Source: Anolis carolinensis
Lineage: Eukaryota
Length of the DNA: 64,000 nucleotides
Reading direction: 5' to 3'
Assembly (NCBI RefSeq): GCF_035594765.1
Contig: NC_085842.1
Coordinates: forward strand, 30,046,782-30,110,781
A program made the position numbers and the translations under genes. How positions within the stretch are numbered: the stretch's first letter is position 1; each line of letters begins with the position of its first letter. Below the pieces are notes generated by a model that was not told the DNA's origin, searched no databases, and saw only the letters and a program-made list of their open reading frames with translations. Positions 9,487-54,638 of this stretch are shown here, in pieces.

Positions 9487-10976
9487 ATGCTTGGTCTTGC
9501 CTTTTCCATATCATGCTCTCTCTTCATCCTGTTTTCACTGGCCTCCAATGCTGCTTCCAAAGATGACCTTGCGGTGGACACCAGCAGTGGCCCTGTCAAG
9601 GGTAAAACTCTCACCGTTGGCTCTGGCTCTGTGAGAGCTTATCTTGGCATCCCCTATGCTGAGCCTCCCTTGGGGAAACTGCGATTCCAGAAGCCTCTTC
9701 CACATCAACCATGGAATCAAATCTTTGAGGCCACCGACTTTGGCAATGCCTGTCCTCAATTACTTCTAACTCAAACACCTGAGGCAAAATTGTGGAATCC
9801 TAATAGGCCCCTGTCAGAAGATTGTCTCTTCCTCAACATCTGGGTGCCCCATCCACAGCCCTCTGTACCAATTCCCATTCTTGTCTGGATACACGGAGGG
9901 GGCTTTGTTGCAGGTACAAGTTCTCTGGATTTGTACAATGGAGCTTCTTTAGCTGCAACTGAGAATGTCATTGTGGCCTCCATGAATTACCGCCTGGGGG
10001 CTCTGGGCTTTCTTTCCTTGCCACCAGCCATCCCAGGAAACATGGGTCTGTGGGACCAACACCTGGCCCTGACCTGGATCAAGCAGAATGCAGCTGCCTT
10101 TGGTGGAGATCCAAGGCGGGTGACGATTTTTGGTCATAGTGCTGGAGCAGCCTTTGTTGGCTTCCATCTCCTCTCATCCAAAAGTGAGTCCCTTTTTGCC
10201 CAAGCTGTGCTTCAGAGTGGAGCCCCCAATGCCATCTGGGGTTGGGTGAGTCCTAAGAAGGCCAAGAATAACTCCTTTGAGCTTAGCCAGCTGCTGGGAT
10301 GTGGAGAAGGCAATGAAAATGAAATTGTGAGTTGCCTTCAGAAAAAAGATGCAATGGAATTTCCTCAGTACGAAACATCTCTGTTTCAGAAAAATAATTA
10401 TATTTTGGAATTCATCTTTGCACCAACAACAGATGGGGAATTTTTGACTGATGATCCTCAGAGTCTTTTAAACTCTCAGCTTGTGCAGACCAAACCTATT
10501 CTCACTGGTGTCACCTCAGATGAAGCGGCTTCCATGCTGGCTTTTATTTTTCCTGGAAACAATCACAGCCTAATCACTCGGGAACAATTTCTAGAAACAT
10601 TAAGAAATACAGTACGAAATGCAACTGAAGAAGATATTCAGGCTGTGGCCCTGAAGTACACTGAAGAAAGTCATGGCCTGGCAAAGTACCGTTCAGCCTT
10701 GGTGCAATCCTTGGGTGATTATTTCTTTGTATGTCCTGCAGCCGAAATTGCTGACCAGATGAGAAAAGCTGGGAGTCCTGTGTATGTTTATCTTTTTACA
10801 CATCACACCTCTGGCACTGTCTGGCCTGAGTGGGCAAAGGCAACCCATGGAGCTGAAGTCATTTATCTGTTTGGAAGCTTTAAGGCAGCATTGGAGGCCA
10901 ACAAAACACACACAGAGGCGGATGCAGCGCTCAGCCAGAGAATAATGCGATATTGGGCAGAGTTCGCCAGAACTGG
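9487..10976 (+). CDS. Cholinesterase-like gene 1, main coding exon (catalytic triad intact)
   Basis: Acceptor ttccag|9479, ATG 9487, signal peptide, LGIPYAEPP, WNPN..SEDCLFLN, HGGGF, GHSAG (Ser AGT 10138-10140), SDEA, THGAE (His 10846-10848), ends FARTG with GG|gtaagg phase 2 as in BCHE-type genes. Confidence 0.95.
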
Positions 10977-22283: not shown

Positions 22284-23734
22284 ATGCCTCGCCTCCTCCT
22301 TTCTGTTTTTGGTCTTTTATTCCTCTCACTGATTTCTGCCTCTGAAGATGATACCGTGGTGGTGACCAACAGTGGCTCCATTCAAGGCAAGAGAATTCTG
22401 GCTGGTCCTGGCTCTGTGACTGCCTATCTTGGCATCCCTTATGCTAAGCCCCCGCTAGGGAAACTCCGGTTCCAGAAGCCTCTTCCACATCCACCCTGGA
22501 CCCACGTGTTGGAGACCACCAGGTTTGGCAATTCTTGTCCCCAAGCAAATGCTTCTGGACTCTTTGATATAGACATATGGGTTGCCAATACACCACTTTC
22601 AGAAGACTGTCTTTTCCTCAATATCTGGGTACCCCACCCAAAGCCCTCCACCCCAGCACCTATCCTTGTATGGATCCAAGGTATGGGTTATGTCACTGGC
22701 ACTGCTTCCTTGGAGATCTATAATGGAGCCACCTTAGCTGCCACAGAGAATGTCATTGTGGCCTCCATGAATTACCGCTTGGGAGCTCTGGGTTTTCTTT
22801 ATATGCCACCACATGCCCCAGGAAATGTTGGCTTATGGGACCAACACCTGGCTCTGAAATGGCTGAAGGAGAACGCAGCTGTCTTTGGTGGTAACCCAGC
22901 TCAATTGACTCTTGTTGGCCACGGTGCTGGAGCAGCCATGGTGGGGTTCCACCTTCTCTCACCTGTAAGCCAACCACTTTTTTCTCATGCTGTGCTCCAG
23001 GGTGGCGTTCCCAATGCCATCTGGCCCTGGAAGGATACCCAGAAAGCAAAGCTAGATGCAGAGATGGTAAGCCAAGAAGTGGGGTGTCCTCTAGATGCTG
23101 ACACGGTAAGCTGTCTACAGAGAATAGAAATTGGGGACAAAAAATTTTCTCAACTGACTGCTATCAATTCCTTGACAGTAGATGGAGAATTCCTGACAGA
23201 TGAGCCAAGAAAACTCCTAAAGGATGCAAATTTTCAGGGTAAATCAATTATCACAGGCATCTTAGCTGATGAAGGATCTACATTTGTATTGTATATGTAT
23301 CCTAACACCAAATCCAATGGTGGGATAGTGACCTGGGAACAGCTTTATCAAGGGGTGATGGGAACAATGGCAAATGGAACAAATGAAGCTGTTGCTCAGG
23401 TTGTAGCACGGAAGTTCAGTGAAAACTATCATGGGCCAGAGCAGTACCGTTTGGCCTTTGCTCAATATTTTAGAGATTACTTCTTTGTGTGCTCTTTGGA
23501 TGAATTTGCTGCAAAGATCCAAGAAGCTGGGAGGCCAGTCTATGTTTATTCCTTCGATCACCGTTCATCTGGTTCCACCTGGCCTGAATGGGTAAAGACG
23601 CCCTATGGGTCTGAGGTGCCTTACCTGTTTGGAAGCTTCAAAGCTGCTTTGCCAACAAGCCAGCCAGTCACAGAGGCAGAAAAAGCACTGAGCCGTAGAG
23701 TGATGCGATATTGGGCCGAGTTTGCCAGAAGTGG
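22284..23734 (+). CDS. Cholinesterase-like gene 2, main coding exon; predicted catalytically inactive
   Basis: Acceptor ctacag|22279, ATG 22284, signal peptide, intact frame. Motifs altered: IQGMGY (oxyanion hole), GHGAG (Ser->Gly), QGG, PYGSE (His->Tyr); Glu (ADEG) kept. Ends FARSG GG|gtaagt. Confidence 0.93.
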
Positions 23735-24743
23735 GTAAGTCATCAAATATTTTGGATCATAAGATCATGTTTGATATTGATGAAATTGACGAGGATAAAA
23801 AAAATTCAATCTATGCTCCATCTTTTCTCATAAACTCGCAAATTGGCTAACAAGTGATTTAAAAACACATTTCAAGTAGCCAATTACAAATATCTAAAAC
23901 CAAAAAGACAACATGTTCAATGTCAAAAGTATCATTAACTAGAAATCAAAATGCTAATATAAAATGAAAGCAATACAAACAAGTAGCCATAAAAAGTATA
24001 ATAAATACTTGCTAATTTCCCATTGGGTGAATAGATAGATTTTGGGGCCCAAATGATTAAGATATAGAAGAGAGCAATAGGAGAAGGCAATCAAGGTGCT
24101 CTAACTTAGGGCCCTTCCAGACAGGCCCTATATCCCAGGATCTGATTCTAGGTTTTCTGCTTTAAACTGGATTATATGAGCCTCACAAAATCAGCACACA
24201 GAAACCGCTTGACACTTGATTACATGAATTCCACGGCTCTTCTCGTGAGGTCTCTACCTGAATGTAGCATTGCTCTCACAACTATTGTTATCAACATGAA
24301 CCACTGTTTTAAAACCCCAAAACCCCTTGCATGCGATAATTTCTTTTGCACCTGGCCTCCTTATCTCTGAGCCAGCGGGAGAAGCGAGTCTTTAATTGCT
24401 GGTCCTATCAGCCCTGTTGACATACCTCTAATCTCTCTGACATCAACAAACATTCATCTTCCCCAATTTCCTCTGACTGCGCTTCTGGCAGGTACCCATG
24501 GAAATGGCCTTCACTATTTTCCTCCTGGGAACCAACAGGAGATTCTAAGACATTTCTGCCAGGAGATTCAACATTTCCCTCCCATCATCCCCAGCTGAAT
24601 TTGATTTCAACATTGGCTGAATTTGAAAGTCTGTTTCCTAAGCACCGAATAACCAAAAAAATGCAAGTGTGTGTATGAGAAAATGTGTTAATCACAAAGA
24701 ATTATCTTTCTCTTTAAACCATGATTTCTTTTTGCATTAAAAG

Positions 24744-24907
24744 AAACCCTACTGGATCAACACCCGGTGAGGGGCAATGGCCACTGTACAATGCCAAGGA
24801 GAAGAAGCTCTTTCACATCAGCACAGGAGCACCCCAACTCAAGCCAGTCTCACCTACTCCTCTCTGTGATTTCTTGACTAATCTGAATGTGAATGCAGCC
24901 AGCACAA
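24744..24907 (+). CDS. Cholinesterase-like gene 2, exon 3
   Basis: aaag|A NPTGSTPGEGQWPLYNAKEKKLFHISTGAPQLKPVSPTPLCDFLTNLNVNAAST A|gtgagt, 164 nt. Confidence 0.9.
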
Positions 24908-25078
24908 GTGAGTTCAGTCCCTCTGAGAAAGAAACTTGTACTTCAAATTTCTATTAGCATTAGGGGCCTTAAATAGAGATTCTCAATTAAAAAGAGCATT
25001 GTGAAGGGGCCGTGTGGTATCCTTGTTACAGAACCACTGAGTTCTGGAAAGAAAATATGTTTGCTTAATGTACTGTGT

Positions 25079-25412
25079 AAAGGTAAAGGTAAAGGTTTCC
25101 TCTGACATTAAGTCCAGTCATGACCGACTCTGGGGGTTGGTGCTCATCTCCATTTCTAAGCCGAAGAGCCGGCGTTGTCCGTAGACCCCTCCAAGGTCAT
25201 GTGGCTGGCGTGACTGCATGGAGCACCGTTACCTTCCCGCCGGAACGGTACCTATTGATTTATTCACATTTGCATGTTTTCGAACTGCTAGGTTGGCAGG
25301 AGCTGGGGCTAACAGCGGGCACTCATTCCGCTCCCGGGATTTGAACCTGGCACCTTTTGGTCCACAAGCTCAGCAACTCAGCGCTTTAATGCACTGTGCC
25401 ACCAGGGGCCCA
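25079..25412 (-). mobile_element. Sauria SINE
   Basis: (AAAGGT)n on + = (ACCTTT)n tail; tRNA-like head at right end. Confidence 0.85.
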
Positions 25413-26840
25413 ATGTACTGTGTATCAATAGAAAATGTTAGTGGGTTTTTTTTGAATACCACATACAAAAGTACCATACTCAGTAAGGCCAGTAGCCACC
25501 CTGGTGGGAGAATTCTGGGAGTTTTCCAGATGGGACTTATAATATACTCCCATTGCTTTGGATGTCTGCCTTTATTCTGCATGAAATTCCTGGGTTGGTA
25601 GTGGCATCATTACCAGACAGCCAAATTCATTTTTGGAAAAGTTCTTGAAGGCCACATTTTAGCAGTGGTGGAAGCCAGAGATAAAAAGGTAGGCTCAAAA
25701 ACAGCAGAATGTTTTCGTTTAGCATTCTTACTACCAATTATATACCTCTTAATAAGAGTTTGACACTAATTTCACTGCCATGGCTGAATGCTATGAAATC
25801 CTGGGAGTTGTGGAGTTATGAGCCACCAGTATTCTTTGGCAAAGAAAGCTATAGATGTCATGAAACTACAACTCCCAGAATTCTATAGCATTAAACTTTG
25901 GAAGTTAAATTGATATCAAACCGAATTAGTTCTACATTGTTGATGCACCAGAGAGAAGCATTTCTGGTATGTTCCAGATAATACAGTAACTCCACATTCA
26001 ACATAAACGGGCCAGCAGAACGTTGGATAAGCAAATATGTTGGATAATAAGGAGAAATTAAGGAAAAGCCTATTAAACATCTAATTAGATTATGATTTTA
26101 CAAATTAAGCACCAAAAACATCAAGTTTTACAACAATTTGACAGCCTCAGCAACCCATGCAAGAAAGGCTGCAGCTGTGACACCAACCCCATCACTGGAA
26201 AACCCATTTGCACATGCACATCTCATGCTAATGGGCCCAAACCTTAATAAGTACTCACTGGGCAAGCAATTCACGTGTGCTTGTTTATTTATTTATATGT
26301 TTACATCCTATGGATTTTCATATGACCTCAAAAATACATTGAGAAATGCACAATTAACACTGACCATTTATTAAACTATTCATGATAACATCTATTAGCC
26401 TTAGATCAGATGGTGACAAGTGTGATGATTTGTCATTTGCTTTTCCCCCAGATTTGGACATATAGTGGCTAACAACTTAAACAACGATATAGTTAAAATA
26501 TATCAAAAGTACAGATTAAAATAAATAAAAAGCTGTTAAAATACATTATTTTATTATTAATACTTCATCTTTTCAATTTTTCCTCTTAACCTGGACAAAG
26601 AAATAGTACCCACAGAATGCTTGGGTTTCAGGTAACTGCTTGTGGGCACTTAATGCACTGTGTATGCCTGCACAATCTGTGGCCCTCCAGGCGTTTTGGA
26701 CTTCAACTCCCAGAATTCCTGACCATTAAACAAGCTGGCTAGGGCTTATGGGAGTATGACTCCCAAGCACCTGGAAGGCCACAGGTTGTGCAGGTCTGAA
26801 CTAGAGTGACATCTGAGTTGGGAAAGTGCAGTCATTAGAT

Positions 26841-26975
26841 CAGGCATGGCCAAACTTTGGCTCTCCAGATGTTTTGGACTTCATCTCCCACCATTCCTAA
26901 CAGCTGGTAAGCAGGCTGGGATGTCTGGGAGTTGAAGTCCAAAACACCAGGAAGGCTGAAGTTTGCCCATGCCTG
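26841..26975. mobile_element. hAT MITE
   Basis: CAGGCATGGCCAAAC...GTTTGCCCATGCCTG with perfect 8-bp TSD CATTAGAT. Confidence 0.85.
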
Positions 26976-27858
26976 CATTAGATGTTGTCGAAATGCATCT
27001 TCCAGCAACCCCAACTACTGGCTAAGCTAGCTAAATCTGTTGGAAGTTGCAGTTTTGTCAAAAACATGGAGCCTACATTTTTCCTACCCCATTCTGAGCT
27101 ATTGATGTTTCCTCCACATCTCCCATGTTATCCATCCAAGCATAATCTTAAAAAAGGGACTTATGTGAAGCTTGGATATACTACTTTTGAGGGACTACAG
27201 ACTCTTATCTCTTTCCCAACCATAAGTGAACCATCCCACTGACACAAGTGCCCCAAGTTTTTCCTGCAGAAGATTAATGTTATATACAATAGAAGGAGGG
27301 AGCAAAGGTTTCAAATATATTAGGTAGGCACACATTAAAAGTACAAAATAACTACAGTATGAGTGCAGAACTAAAATGTGTAAATTATCCTCAGCCCAGG
27401 TTCTAGCCACATAGTGTGACAAGAAAAGAGACATTTATCTGCAAGAAGAAGTCAGTTCGAACTGACTAAACTAGAGAAAAATAAGGCAGCACAACATCTA
27501 AGAGAAACGTCACCTGGACCACTTGTCAATCGTTATTTAGGTTCTAGCATAATGTTTTTAATTTTTCTATGATTTGCTCATTGGTGTTTGCTGCAATCAA
27601 GATGGAATTAGGAGTAGTCAAAATCTTTTTTCACGAATGAAGTAAATATTTTTGGTTTATTGAAGACCCCTTCAGTATAAGCATCACAGCTTTGATTTTC
27701 TTTTTACATATTCCCCCTTACTCATTTATTTGCAGTATACGTTTTAAAAGATAAATATTTGATTTAGTTCATTTGCAGATTTTACTGTTCTCAGATTAAA
27801 TATTCATAAGTTTAAAGGAATGAAATGAAATGATATCTATTTTCCCTTGTCTCTACAG

Positions 27859-27866
27859 ACCAATAG
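27859..27866 (+). CDS. Probable terminal coding exon of gene 2 (adds NQ*)
   Basis: Strong acceptor ttttcccttgtctctacag|; phase 1 gives A+AC CAA TAG; ATTAAA at 27974; downstream 28107-28145 is homologous to 58337-58373, which lies 3' of gene 4's last exon. Confidence 0.5.
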
Positions 27867-28301
27867 TTACAATCAAGAAGCATCTGGAAGAAACTGGAAG
27901 AATGGACCTGTATAGAGATTATACTTTGTTTGGAAAACTCACAGTCTTCCATGTGTATTAATCATTCATTCAAATTAAAAAAATTCATGCTTATTTACTC
28001 TGTTGGTGTTATAAAAAATTGAAGTACTACGTATACCCATGTTTATACACACTGTCTCTGGCAAAACAGTGTTAGAGTATGACTGTAAATACTATCAATA
28101 CAATTTTAGGCCTGGATTTTACAGCTGAATCCTCTCATTATATCTAAATTCCTAGGTTCTCAATTTTTGCCATTCTATTCAGCAAAGGGGATGGTGTTGT
28201 TTTTTTTTTTTAATGAGTTAAGGTACAGTACTTACACTGATCCATTGATAAGTCAACCCAGATTTTGTGGGCTAATTTTCTGAGTAAAAATTTTCAACTT
28301 T

Positions 28302-29029
28302 CCAGGCTACTAACTGGAGCAAATTACAAGACGCGGTCTACCCCCCTGTTTAAGGAGCTCCATTGGCTGCCATTTATTTTCCAAGCCCAATTCAAGGTGC
28401 AGGTTATCACCTATAAAACCCTTAACGGTTCGGGACCCACCTACCTTCGCAACCGTATTTCCCCCTATGAACCTGCACGGTCTCTCCGTTCATCAGGGGA
28501 GGCCCTCCTCTCGATCCCACCACCCTCGCAATCGCGGTTGGTGGGGACGAGGGAGAGGGCCTTCTCCGTCGTGGGCTCTCCCCAGGGAGATTAGGCAGGC
28601 CCCTACCCTCCTTATTTTTCAGAAGAGCCTGAAAACTTGGCTCTTCCAACAGCCTTTTGGCAACTGATTTCCTTAGTTTGAGATTGCCCTGTTTGTCCAT
28701 TCTATTTTTATAGCATTTTTACTCCTTGCCGTATATAGTTTTTAGGTGTATGCCTCCCCCAGCACCTTAATGGGATAATAGTCCCTGGTACCTCCTCTTT
28801 CCTAATCTGTATTGTTATAAAACTATTTGCACCTTTCTGGCCCGCTACCCTTTTTAGGAGCCAACCCAAGTTTTTATCAAAGTGTGCTTATTGTTTATTG
28901 GTATATGGGATTTTATTTGTTTATGATTTGTTTTTATTGCTGAGTTTTATATTGCTTGTTGCCTGGGCTTGGCCCCATGTAAGCCGCCGCGAGTCCCCTC
29001 GGGGAGATGGGGCGGGGTATAAAAATAAA

Positions 29030-35528: not shown

Positions 35529-37003
35529 ATGCTTGGTCTTGCCTCTTCCATATTATGCTCCTTCTTCATCCTGTTTTCACTGACCTCCAATGCTGCCTCC
35601 AAAGATGACCTTGTAGTGAACACCAGCAGTGGTCCTATCAATGGCAAAGCTCTCACCATTGGCTCTGGCTCTGTGAGAGCTTATCTTGGCATCCCCTATG
35701 CTGAGCCCCCCTTGGGGAAACTGCGATTCCAGAAGCCTCTTCCACATAAGCCATGGAGTCAAATCTTTGAGGCCACTAACTTTGGCAATGCCTGTCTTCA
35801 GTCAGTTCTTTCTCAAACACCTGAGGCAAAATTGTGGAATCCCAATAGGCCCCTGTCAGAAGATTGTCTCTTTCTCAACATCTGGGTGCCCCATCCACAG
35901 CCCTCTGTACCAATTCCCATTCTTGTCTGGATACACGGAGGGGGCTTTGTTGCAGGTACAAGTTCCCTGGATTTGTACAATGGGGCTTCCTTAGCTGCGA
36001 CTGAGAATGTCATTGTGGCCTCCATGAATTACCGCCTGGGGGCTCTGGGCTTTCTTTCGTTGCCACCAGCTGTCCCAGGAAACATGGGTCTGTGGGACCA
36101 ACACCTGGCCCTGACCTGGATCAAGCAGAATGCAGCTGCCTTCGGTGGAGATCCAAAGCGGGTGACGATTTTTGGCCACAGTGCTGGAGCAGCCTCTGTT
36201 GGCTTCCATCTCCTTTCACCTAAAAGTGAGCCCCTTTTTGCCCAAGCTGTGCTTCAGAGTGGAGCTATCTACGCTTCGGCAAGTCCCGGGAAGGCCAAGA
36301 ATAACTCCCTTGAATTTAGCCAGCTGTTAGGATGTGGAGAAGGCAATGAAAATGAAATTGTGAGCTGTCTTCAGGACAAAAATGCAGTGGAATTTCCTCA
36401 GCATGAAGCATCTCTGAGTAAGAAAAAACCTCTGTATCCTGTATTTGAACCAACAGCCGATGGGGAATTTTTGACTGATGATCCTCAGAGTCTTTTAGAC
36501 TCTCAGCATGTTCAGATCAAACCAGTTCTCACTGGTGTCACCTCAGATGAAGCAGCTCCTATCGTGGATTTAATTATTCTTGGAAGCAATTATAGCCAAA
36601 TCACTATGGAAATTTTTTTAACTGTATTAAGGTATCTAGTGCGAAACACAACTGAAGAAGATATTCAAGCTGTGGCCCTGAAATACAGTGAAGAGAGTCA
36701 TGGCCCAGCAAAGTACCGTTCAGGCTTGGTGCAGTCTTTGGGTGATTATTTCTTTGTATGTCCTGTAGCCAAATTTGCTGGCCAGATTAGAAATGTTGGG
36801 AGTCCTGTGTATGTTTACCTTTTTACACATCACACCTCTGGCACTGTCTGGCCTGAGTGGGTAGGGGTGCCTCATGGAGCGGAACTCATTTATCTATTTG
36901 GAAACTTTGAGGCAGCATTTCAGGCCAACAAAACACATACAGAAGCGGAAGAAGCACTCAGCCGTAGGATAATGCAATATTGGGCAGAGTTTGCCAGAAC
37001 TGG
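35529..37003 (+). CDS. Cholinesterase-like gene 3, main coding exon (triad intact)
   Basis: Acceptor ttccag|35521, ATG 35529; HGGGF, GHSAG, SDEA, PHGAE; 3-codon deletion in QSGA---IYAS; ends FARTG GG|gtaagg. Confidence 0.95.
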
Positions 37004-53148: not shown

Positions 53149-54638
53149 ATGCTTGGTCTTGCCTCTTCCATATCATGCTTCTTCTTCATCCTGTTTTCAC
53201 TGACCTCCAATACTGCCTCCAAAGATGACCTTGTGGTGGACACCAGCAGTGGCCCTGTCAAGGGCAAATCTCTCACCGTTGGCTCTGGCTCTGTGAGAGC
53301 TTATCTTGGCATCCCCTATGCTGAGCCTCCCTTGGGGAGACTGCGATTCCAGAAGCCTCTTCCACATCAACCATGGAGTCAAATCTTTGAGGCCACTGAC
53401 TTTGGAAATGCCTGTCCTCAGTCAGTTCTTTCTCAAACACCTGAGGCAAAAATGGTGAATCCTAATAGGCCCCTGTCAGAAGATTGCCTCTTTCTCAACA
53501 TCTGGGTGCCTCATCCGCAACCCTCTGTACCAATTCCCATCCTTGTCTGGATACACGGAGGGGGATTTATTTCAGGTACAAGTTCCCTGGACTTGTACAA
53601 TGGGTCTTCCTTAGCTGTGACTCAGAATGTCATTGTGGCCTCCATGAATTACCGCCTGGGGGCTCTGGGCTTCCTTTCCTTGCCACCAGCTGTCCCAGGA
53701 AACATGGGTCTGTGGGACCAACACCTAGCCCTGACCTGGATCAGGCAGAATGCAGCTGCCTTTGGTGGAGATCCAAAGCGAGTGATAATTTTTGGTCAGA
53801 GTTCTGGAGCAGCCTCTGTGGGTCTTCACCTCCTCTCACCCAAAAGTGAGTCCCTTTTTGCCCAAGCTGTGCTTCAGAGTGGCGCTCCCAATGCTATTTG
53901 GGCTTGGGCAAGTCCTGAGCAGGCCAAGAATAAATCCCTTGAGCTTAGCCAACTTCTGGGATGTGGAGAAGGTAATGAAAATGAGATAGTAAACTGTCTT
54001 CGGGGGAAAAATGCAATGGAATTTCCTCCGTATGAAACATTGCTGGTACTGAAAAGTAAGTTTCTTATGTGTCTCCCCTTCATACCAACAACAGATGGGG
54101 AATTTTTGACTGATGATCCCCAGAGTCTTTTAGACTCCCAGCATGTGCAGACCAAGCCAATTCTGACTGGTGTCAACTCAGATGAAGCAGCTTCCTTGTT
54201 GATTTTTATTTTTCCTGGAAGCAATCACAGCCTAATCAATCATGAACAATTTCTAAAAGTATTAAGAAGTGCATTGCAAAATGCAACTGAAGAAGAAATT
54301 CAGGCCGTGGCTCTCAAGTACAGTGAAGAGAGTCATGGGCCAGCAAAGTACCGTTCAGCCTTGGTGCAATCCTTGGGTGATTATTTATTTGTATGCCCTG
54401 CAACTGAATTTGCTGCCAAGATCAGAAAAGCTGGGAGTCCTGTGTATGTTTACTATTTTACGCATCACACTTCTGGCACTGTCTGGCCTGAGTGGGCAAA
54501 CGCAACCCATGGAGCTGAACTCATTTATGTGTTTGGAAGTTTTAAGGCAGCATTGGAGGCCAACAAAACCTACACAGAGGCCGAGGCAGCACTTAGCCGT
54601 AGGATAATGCAATATTGGGCGGAGTTCGCCAGAACTGG
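53149..54638 (+). CDS. Cholinesterase-like gene 4, main coding exon (triad intact, choline-site Trp lost)
   Basis: Acceptor ttccag|53141, ATG 53149; KMVNPN (W->V), HGGGF, GQSSG, SDEA, THGAE; ends FARTG GG|gtaaga. Confidence 0.95.

Follow-up and report, generated by a model that had tools for sequence, protein, structure and literature searches.

A cholinesterase-like gene of Anolis carolinensis without catalytic serine and histidine, and its lineage in toxicoferan squamates

Introduction

Can a cholinesterase gene that has lost its catalytic residues and kept the rest of its structure be more than a gene on its way to extinction? This question is raised by a 64,000-nucleotide stretch of the Anolis carolinensis genome (RefSeq assembly GCF_035594765.1, contig NC_085842.1, positions 30,046,782 to 30,110,781 of the forward strand; hereafter, the window), which carries four tandem cholinesterase-like genes on the + strand, with large exons at about 9.5, 22.3, 35.5, and 53.1 kb. 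These genes are named here A to D, in this order. The second one, copy B, was described in the original prediction, made from the DNA letters, as a catalytically dead but intact paralog selected for a new, non-enzymatic role. The follow-up analysis indicates that copy B is probably the A. carolinensis member of a single-copy, butyrylcholinesterase (BChE)-like lineage of Toxicofera, in which esterase chemistry was given up stepwise while purifying selection kept the gene, and that it probably acts as a secreted, non-catalytic binding protein.

Catalytic residues of copy B

The human BChE equivalents given throughout were obtained by residue-by-residue alignment of copy B to BChE structures (the codons are listed in Table 1). 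Gly214 takes the place of the nucleophile S198, Tyr441 that of the catalytic histidine H438 (the general base), Met134 that of the middle glycine of the oxyanion hole (G116), and Gly240 that of the serine of the QSG motif (S224). The four codons on which the original prediction was founded (GGT, TAT, ATG, and GGT) were all recovered where it had placed them. With Gly214/Glu330/Tyr441 at the positions of the Ser-Glu-His triad, and without the GGG loop, copy B lacks two attributes expected of an active cholinesterase. It does possess the choline-site Trp and the three disulfides of active cholinesterases, and the gorge equivalents of Y128, W231, F329, Y332, F398, and W430 of human BChE are kept. 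All 107 other squamate homologues have the canonical residue at the equivalents of G116, S224, and H438, and 100 of the 107 have it at that of S198; the four changes at these sites in copy B are not a product of chance.

The decisive catalytic losses are His to Tyr and Ser to Gly, not GMG. The oxyanion hole is built from backbone NH groups, so that a Met at the G116 position need not end catalysis. The A. carolinensis protein has neither Ser nor His, and classical acyl-enzyme catalysis is, therefore, excluded for copy B. Judged by its predicted protein, copy B is a pseudoenzyme, i.e., an otherwise intact homologue in which essential catalytic residues have been lost, and the RefSeq name "cholinesterase", borne by XP_003217977 and its orthologues, is functionally misleading. 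The GH-x-AG pattern at the nucleophile is not special to copy B, because all of the squamate family has His or Gln just before the nucleophile position.

Such substitutions could also arise if an ordinary, active paralog had been misread in sequencing or assembly. This explanation fails on two grounds. An older A. carolinensis model (XP_003217977.2 / R4GBT6; P0123) agrees with the window at all four sites (Gly, Tyr, Met, and Gly) while differing from it at three other residues, and three of the four changes recur in other species, which were sequenced independently. The probability left to an artefact is negligible.

Gene structure and predicted product

The frame, splice sites, signal peptide, structural cysteines, catalytic Glu, and choline-site Trp had been reported as preserved, and this is borne out by the DNA and by the RefSeq protein XP_003217977.3. 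The large coding exon is a 484-codon open frame, the translation of which is identical to XP_003217977.3 over 484 of 484 amino acids. PF00135 (COesterase) matches residues 23-484 (E = 4.4e-120, 402 bits), placing the product in this superfamily. A GTAAGT donor is found at 23735, and the second coding exon is flanked by an AG acceptor and a GTGAGT donor. The gene model holds, with one correction: the large exon ends at 23734 and not at 23735, since the open frame's final G already belongs to the GT donor. The length and the C-terminus (...ASTNQ) of XP_003217977.3 are those predicted by the splice junctions read in the DNA, and this protein, not hand-joined exons, was used for the full-length analyses of copy B. 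The C-terminus is further supported by tblastn to orthologue C-termini, XP_003217977.3 and the A. sagrei protein P0001 both ending in ...TNQ.

At the other end, the mature N-terminus (EDD...) aligns with that of human BChE, the BChE chains starting at query residues 19-21. The six structural cysteines (Cys85/109, 268/277, and 403/525) are invariant or nearly so in a 40-sequence alignment. Neither a T (WAT) tetramerisation peptide nor a glycosylphosphatidylinositol (GPI) signal was found in copy B, which ends ...NAASTNQ, 15 residues past Cys525. Likewise, there is no transmembrane segment, cytoplasmic tail, or extra domain in the RefSeq-matching model, the 540-amino-acid product of which stops directly after the cholinesterase (ChE) domain. 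The AlphaFold2 (AF2) model of copy B has the cholinesterase fold (predicted template modelling score, pTM, 0.83), with a template modelling (TM) score of ~0.8 to both acetylcholinesterase (AChE) and BChE.

Orthologues and order of the losses

A search of a protein collection yielded close relatives of copy B in many squamates, one per species. Their identity to copy B is 95% for A. sagrei, 83% for Sceloporus, 74% for Pogona, 76% and 71% for two transcript-derived proteins, and 63-70% for Elgaria, Varanus, Python, Thamnophis, Pituophis, Erythrolamprus, Vipera, and Crotalus. In a 74-sequence tree, copy B and these orthologues form a 14-member clade of Iguania, Anguimorpha, and snakes, supported at 100% by the Shimodaira-Hasegawa-like approximate likelihood ratio test (SH-aLRT). 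Snakes branch first, then Anguimorpha and Iguania, in agreement with the species tree, the sister groups of the clade being paralogs from lacertids and skinks in which the residues are canonical.

What had been presented as four hits in one diverged paralog turns out to be a succession: all four changes are present, but they are spread stepwise across the clade, and only Ser to Gly is species-specific. Replacement of the oxyanion middle Gly by Met, Ile, or Leu (GMG, GIG, or GLG) occurs in all 14 members and is the hallmark of the clade. The catalytic His is replaced by Tyr in every iguanian and anguimorph sampled, and is kept in five of the six snakes. The sixth, Thamnophis elegans, has Tyr encoded by TAC, while its near relative Pituophis and the four other snakes keep His; this residue was, therefore, lost at least twice, each time to Tyr. 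QGG is common to A. carolinensis and A. sagrei only. The nucleophile Ser is kept in 13 of 13 orthologues (by synonymous AGT or AGC codons), Gly being found in A. carolinensis only among the species sampled, and this last change came after the loss of the QSG Ser in the Anolis stem. The order of dismantling, as reconstructed, is the oxyanion loop, His, the supporting QSG Ser, and the nucleophile last, which amounts to a stepwise staircase in a long-standing gene lineage. On general dating, its steps begin at the stem of Toxicofera, end inside the genus Anolis, and cover roughly 170 million years (My).

The late loss of Ser leaves room for a different reading, that of an enzyme with altered chemistry. 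The Tyr-bearing orthologues would then rely on a Ser/Glu/Tyr set or on a Glu-activated Tyr, and the snake proteins, combining the triad with GMG, would be esterases of changed specificity. This would account for the invariance of Ser198 and Glu325 in the other clade members, with synonymous codons at Ser, for the His of most snakes, and for the replacement of His, twice, by Tyr alone; as noted above, Met at G116 need not destroy the oxyanion hole. CAT to TAT is, however, a single transition, so that two hits on Tyr can be chance. Moreover, His to Tyr takes away the general base, and the A. carolinensis protein lacks both Ser and His. Altered chemistry is, on balance, highly improbable for the lineage; the triad-keeping snake orthologues may still be enzymes.

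Five residues define the clade, in the sense that they are fixed within it while another state is conserved elsewhere: Q132, M134, P248, N295, and F378. The oxyanion loop contains Q132 and M134, P248 is beside the acyl-pocket Trp, N295 is in the acyl loop (where, due to an indel nearby, it can be placed only as a position about N289/F290 of human BChE), and F378 lies elsewhere. Four of the five are no more than two residues away from oxyanion-hole or acyl-pocket positions, a placement shared by about 10% of positions (post-hoc P ~5e-4). At the gorge mouth, the Y332 equivalent is variable within the clade (Y/L/F/H). An acyl-loop deletion was also considered as a hallmark of copy B and rejected, being common to a far larger set of squamate paralogs. 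As a separate observation, colubroid and viperid orthologues (P0009-P0013) all have Met at the acyl-pocket equivalent of F398, where Python and all lizards have Phe.

Selection on the lineage

The orthologous large exon was taken from genomic or transcript loci of eleven species. By the Nei-Gojobori method (NG86; 461 ungapped codons, 10 species), the ratio of nonsynonymous to synonymous substitution rates (dN/dS, or omega in codon models) ranges from 0.13 to 0.33 over all pairs and is nowhere near 1. This includes pairs in which both members are without His, namely Sceloporus-Anolis (0.20), Pogona and the agamid transcript (0.13), and Elgaria-Varanus (0.26). Between A. carolinensis and A. sagrei, dN/dS for copy B is 0.18-0.28, and the exon is 93% identical, compared with 86-89% in the flanking non-coding DNA. 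With the Goldman-Yang (GY) codon model, omega is 0.286 for the whole copy B clade, 0.275 for the eight Tyr-bearing taxa, and 0.363 for three snakes, and it reaches 0.556 for the intact paralogs A, C, and D with their A. sagrei neighbour. The dead copy B is thus more constrained than the live paralogs next to it.

These values bear on the possibility that the gene is decaying in A. carolinensis, with Ser to Gly as a recent loss of function that has not yet been followed by a broken frame, in a lineage that was functional earlier, perhaps as an enzyme acting through its Ser. The restriction of Ser to Gly to A. carolinensis, while all 13 orthologues (eight of them with Tyr) keep Ser, would suit such a history, and so would three amino-acid polymorphisms between two individuals. 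Nevertheless, the A. carolinensis branch, polarised with Sceloporus, has 17 synonymous and 5 nonsynonymous codon changes, the latter including Ser to Gly, which corresponds to an omega of ~0.09, the lowest measured (binomial P = 1.7e-7 against neutrality). There is no damage to the frame, the three splice junctions, the signal peptide, or the cysteines, both model versions have Gly, and functional neuroligins carry the same replacement at the elbow. The QSG Ser was already gone in the ancestor shared with A. sagrei, and dismantling, therefore, preceded the loss of the nucleophile without decay. The young-pseudogene reading of copy B is not supported, and decay is considered quite improbable.

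Purifying selection appears to have acted after catalytic loss, in the lineages with Tyr as well as on the branch to A. carolinensis. The orthologues found across Toxicofera are intact and, together with the low dN/dS and the spliced Tyr-type transcripts of other lizards, they support the non-enzymatic, selection-kept role that the original prediction had put forward.

Transcripts of orthologues

Two orthologues with GMG and Tyr are represented by complete, spliced coding sequences on contigs of less than 2 kb, from RNA runs SRR6291286 (agamid-like) and SRR12676605, and the exon-2 and exon-3 matches abut on both contigs. The second run is total RNA from a lung-liver-kidney pool of veiled chameleon (PMC7699425). 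Its protein falls beside the agamids in the tree, which is consistent with a chameleon origin. By analogy, this transcript would fit a liver-secreted plasma protein like BChE, and it is no proof of one.

Proposed role

Copy B would be a soluble, secreted protein, probably monomeric or dimeric, which, if BChE and the chameleon transcript are a guide, may be produced in the liver and enter the plasma. Its remodelled gorge would bind a ligand stoichiometrically, with no hydrolysis, and the lineage would have begun with a reshaped active centre, not with random decay. Ligand binding in the gorge is supported by the clade-defining residues, because four of the five are in the oxyanion loop or the acyl pocket. 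As for the putative ligand, a small cationic or hydrophobic molecule fits best to the kept aromatic gorge.

Several points weigh against a secreted, non-catalytic binding protein of this kind. The gorge aromatics are core structural residues of the family, and their conservation is, therefore, no proof of ligand binding. The confidence of the AF2 model is moderate (predicted local distance difference test, pLDDT, 76) and poor in the oxyanion loop (135-140). The equivalents of Ser198 and Glu325 are unchanged in every other clade member, including all Tyr-bearing orthologues, in which some chemistry may survive, or Ser may serve a purpose since dropped by A. carolinensis. Three amino-acid differences between two A. 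carolinensis models are rather many. A branch-average omega cannot date the Ser-to-Gly change, and a very recent relaxation would escape it. Lastly, the transcript evidence comes from Tyr-type orthologues of other lizards, not from A. carolinensis.

Another way of using the dead fold would be as a protein-binding surface, with an active paralog (in a heterodimer formed via the four-helix bundle) or a Ly6/uPAR three-finger protein as the partner, and with the gorge irrelevant. Neuroligins bind neurexin, AChE is bound by three-finger fasciculins, and the known non-catalytic cholinesterase folds act in this way; the variability of the Y332 equivalent is also as expected if the gorge entrance is not a functional site. 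The clade-defining changes cluster, however, in the active centre and not on the surface, which makes this alternative unlikely.

Binding of a ligand in the gorge can be developed into a more specific scenario, which is speculative and has to be rated as distinctly unlikely in this form. It is that of a Toxicofera-wide secreted decoy, converted ~170 My ago from an esterase to a stoichiometric carrier or sink, its ligand being cholinergic or anticholinesterase (quaternary amines of dietary or endogenous origin, or three-finger/fasciculin-like proteins) and the twice-evolved Glu-Tyr pair being used by lizards for binding or for non-serine chemistry.

Array context and other family members

Paralogs A, C, and D are 81-84% identical among themselves and only 53-55% identical to copy B, the most diverged copy of the four. 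The features of copy B and of its neighbours are collected in Table 1.

Table 1. Features of copy B and neighbouring paralogs, in positions of the window (residue equivalents refer to human BChE)
Feature	Position	Strand	Remarks
Copy B, whole cholinesterase-like gene	22284-27866	+	540 aa; RefSeq "cholinesterase" XP_003217977.3 (P0122)
Copy B, coding exon 1	22284..23734	+	Residues 1-483 and two bases of Gly484; nearly all of the COesterase domain
Copy B, signal peptide, residues 1-20 (MPRLLLSVFGLLFLSLISAS)	22284..22343	+	Cleavage site inferred by homology
Trp99, TGG	22578..22580	+	Choline-binding Trp82; kept; W in 14/14 clade members
Met134, ATG (GMG)	22683..22685	+	Oxyanion-hole middle Gly G116; GGG or GGC in paralogs A/C/D
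Gly214, GGT, in GGC CAC GGT GCT GGA (GHGAG)	22923..22925	+	Nucleophile S198; AGT in paralogs A/C/D
Gly240, GGT (QGG)	23001..23003	+	QSG Ser S224; AGT in paralogs A/C/D
Glu330, GAA	23271..23273	+	Catalytic acid E325; kept; E in 14/14 clade members
Tyr441, TAT (PYGSE)	23604..23606	+	Catalytic His H438 (general base); CAT in paralogs A/C/D
Copy B, coding exon 2	24744..24907	+	Last base of Gly484 and residues 485-538 (NPTGS...NAAST), including Cys525 of the third disulfide
Copy B, terminal coding piece	27859..27866	+	AC CAA TAG = Asn539-Gln540-stop
Paralog A, large exon	9487..10976	+	Canonical GHSAG, GGG, QSG, and His; 55% identical to B
Paralog C, large exon	35529..37003	+	Canonical catalytic residues; 54% identical to B
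Paralog D, large exon	53149..54638	+	Triad present; GQSSG elbow; Trp82 to Val

Paralog D has a Val codon (GTG) at the choline-site Trp (MVNPN, 53452-53466), and its GQSSG elbow lies at 53794-53811. The intact Anolis paralogs A, C, and D, taken with the A. sagrei copy at L010:17860-19338, evolve fast (pairwise dN/dS of 0.36-0.63; codon-model omega of 0.56). This fast evolution, with one-to-one orthology blurred between A. carolinensis and A. sagrei, suggests that the live part of the array turns over rapidly or is under diversifying selection.

Copy B is not the sole family member to have lost its nucleophile. A clade with Ser replaced by Asn, separate from the copy B clade in the tree, comprises P0113 (Anolis), P0058 (Sceloporus), P0051 (Pogona), and P0054 (Elgaria). 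Both clades belong to one array family and are conserved in several lizard families; the Ser-to-Asn clade keeps His and GGG, whereas the copy B clade lost the oxyanion Gly and His first, and Ser last, in one species. The lacertid paralogs P0015 (Zootoca) and P0020 (Lacerta) form a Ser-to-Gly pair without the nucleophile Ser (LGLGEGG/LGLGSGA). Counting these, the nucleophile has been lost in no fewer than three separate clades of the squamate family, and this speaks for a demand, arising repeatedly, for versions of the fold that bind.

Two further observations concern the DNA in and beyond the last intron of copy B. Within this intron, a short open frame (26146-26244, + strand) has an EGF-like translation of the Notch type (...NPCKKGCSCDTNPITGKPICTCTSHANGPKP, followed by a stop). 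The last exon of a Sceloporus model, "cholinesterase-like isoform X1" (P0002, 663 aa), in which the ChE domain is fused to EGF repeats, matches this frame at 70% identity and ends with the same ...KP and stop; no such frame was found at the A. sagrei locus. Either a Notch-like fragment was captured here and has left a relic, or the frame is an alternative 3' exon. Downstream of copy B, overlapping open reading frames on both strands at 28265-28700 resemble a retroelement remnant (e.g., ...LHWLPFIFQAQFKVQVITYKTLNGSGPTYL...).

Comparison with known systems

No paper on the copy B lineage, the Ser-to-Asn clade, or the lacertid Ser losses was found in the literature on cholinesterase-like genes, BCHE paralogs, squamates, and pseudoenzymes. 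The only related trace was a "ChE-like" entry in a legend of a Sinomicrurus venom proteome.

The best Protein Data Bank (PDB) sequence matches of copy B are a BChE variant (424 bits), human BChE (397 bits), and AChE (373-402 bits), at 36-40% identity. Copy B shares with these enzymes the fold, the signal peptide, three disulfides, the gorge Trp, and the catalytic Glu, and differs from them by the absence of the nucleophile Ser, the catalytic His, the QSG Ser, and the tetramerisation peptide, and by the Met in the oxyanion loop. Compared with BChE, its omega loop is shorter by 3 residues and its acyl loop by about 10; the deletions are in part common to all or some of the wider squamate family. 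One large exon followed by small exons is the typical BCHE layout, and copy B has a similar one.

Within the squamate "cholinesterase-like" tandem family (RefSeq-predicted), copy B lies inside the array, among canonical copies, as do its counterparts in A. sagrei and Sceloporus, and it shares the GH/Q-S-A-G-type elbow region and the short C-terminus. Its clade differs from the rest of the family in evolving slowly (omega of 0.29 vs. 0.56 for the neighbouring paralogs), in having one copy per species, in QGMG, and, in lizards, in Tyr for His.

Neuroligins and related cholinesterase-like adhesion molecules (CLAMs), as well as the cholinesterase-like (ChEL) domain of thyroglobulin, likewise use the cholinesterase fold as a non-catalytic module, and in neuroligins the nucleophile is replaced by Gly. 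Copy B is not a neuroligin orthologue: its best PDB matches are BChE and AChE, and it nests in the squamate BChE-like expansion. Those proteins are ancient, separate lineages, either membrane-anchored or part of a giant multidomain protein, whereas copy B is predicted to be a stand-alone, secreted domain of 540 amino acids. No description of a stand-alone, secreted, non-catalytic cholinesterase fold in the reptile BChE-like radiation was found in the searchable literature. With its ordered dismantling of the catalytic centre under continuous purifying selection, the lineage offers a natural series for the transition from enzyme to binding protein.

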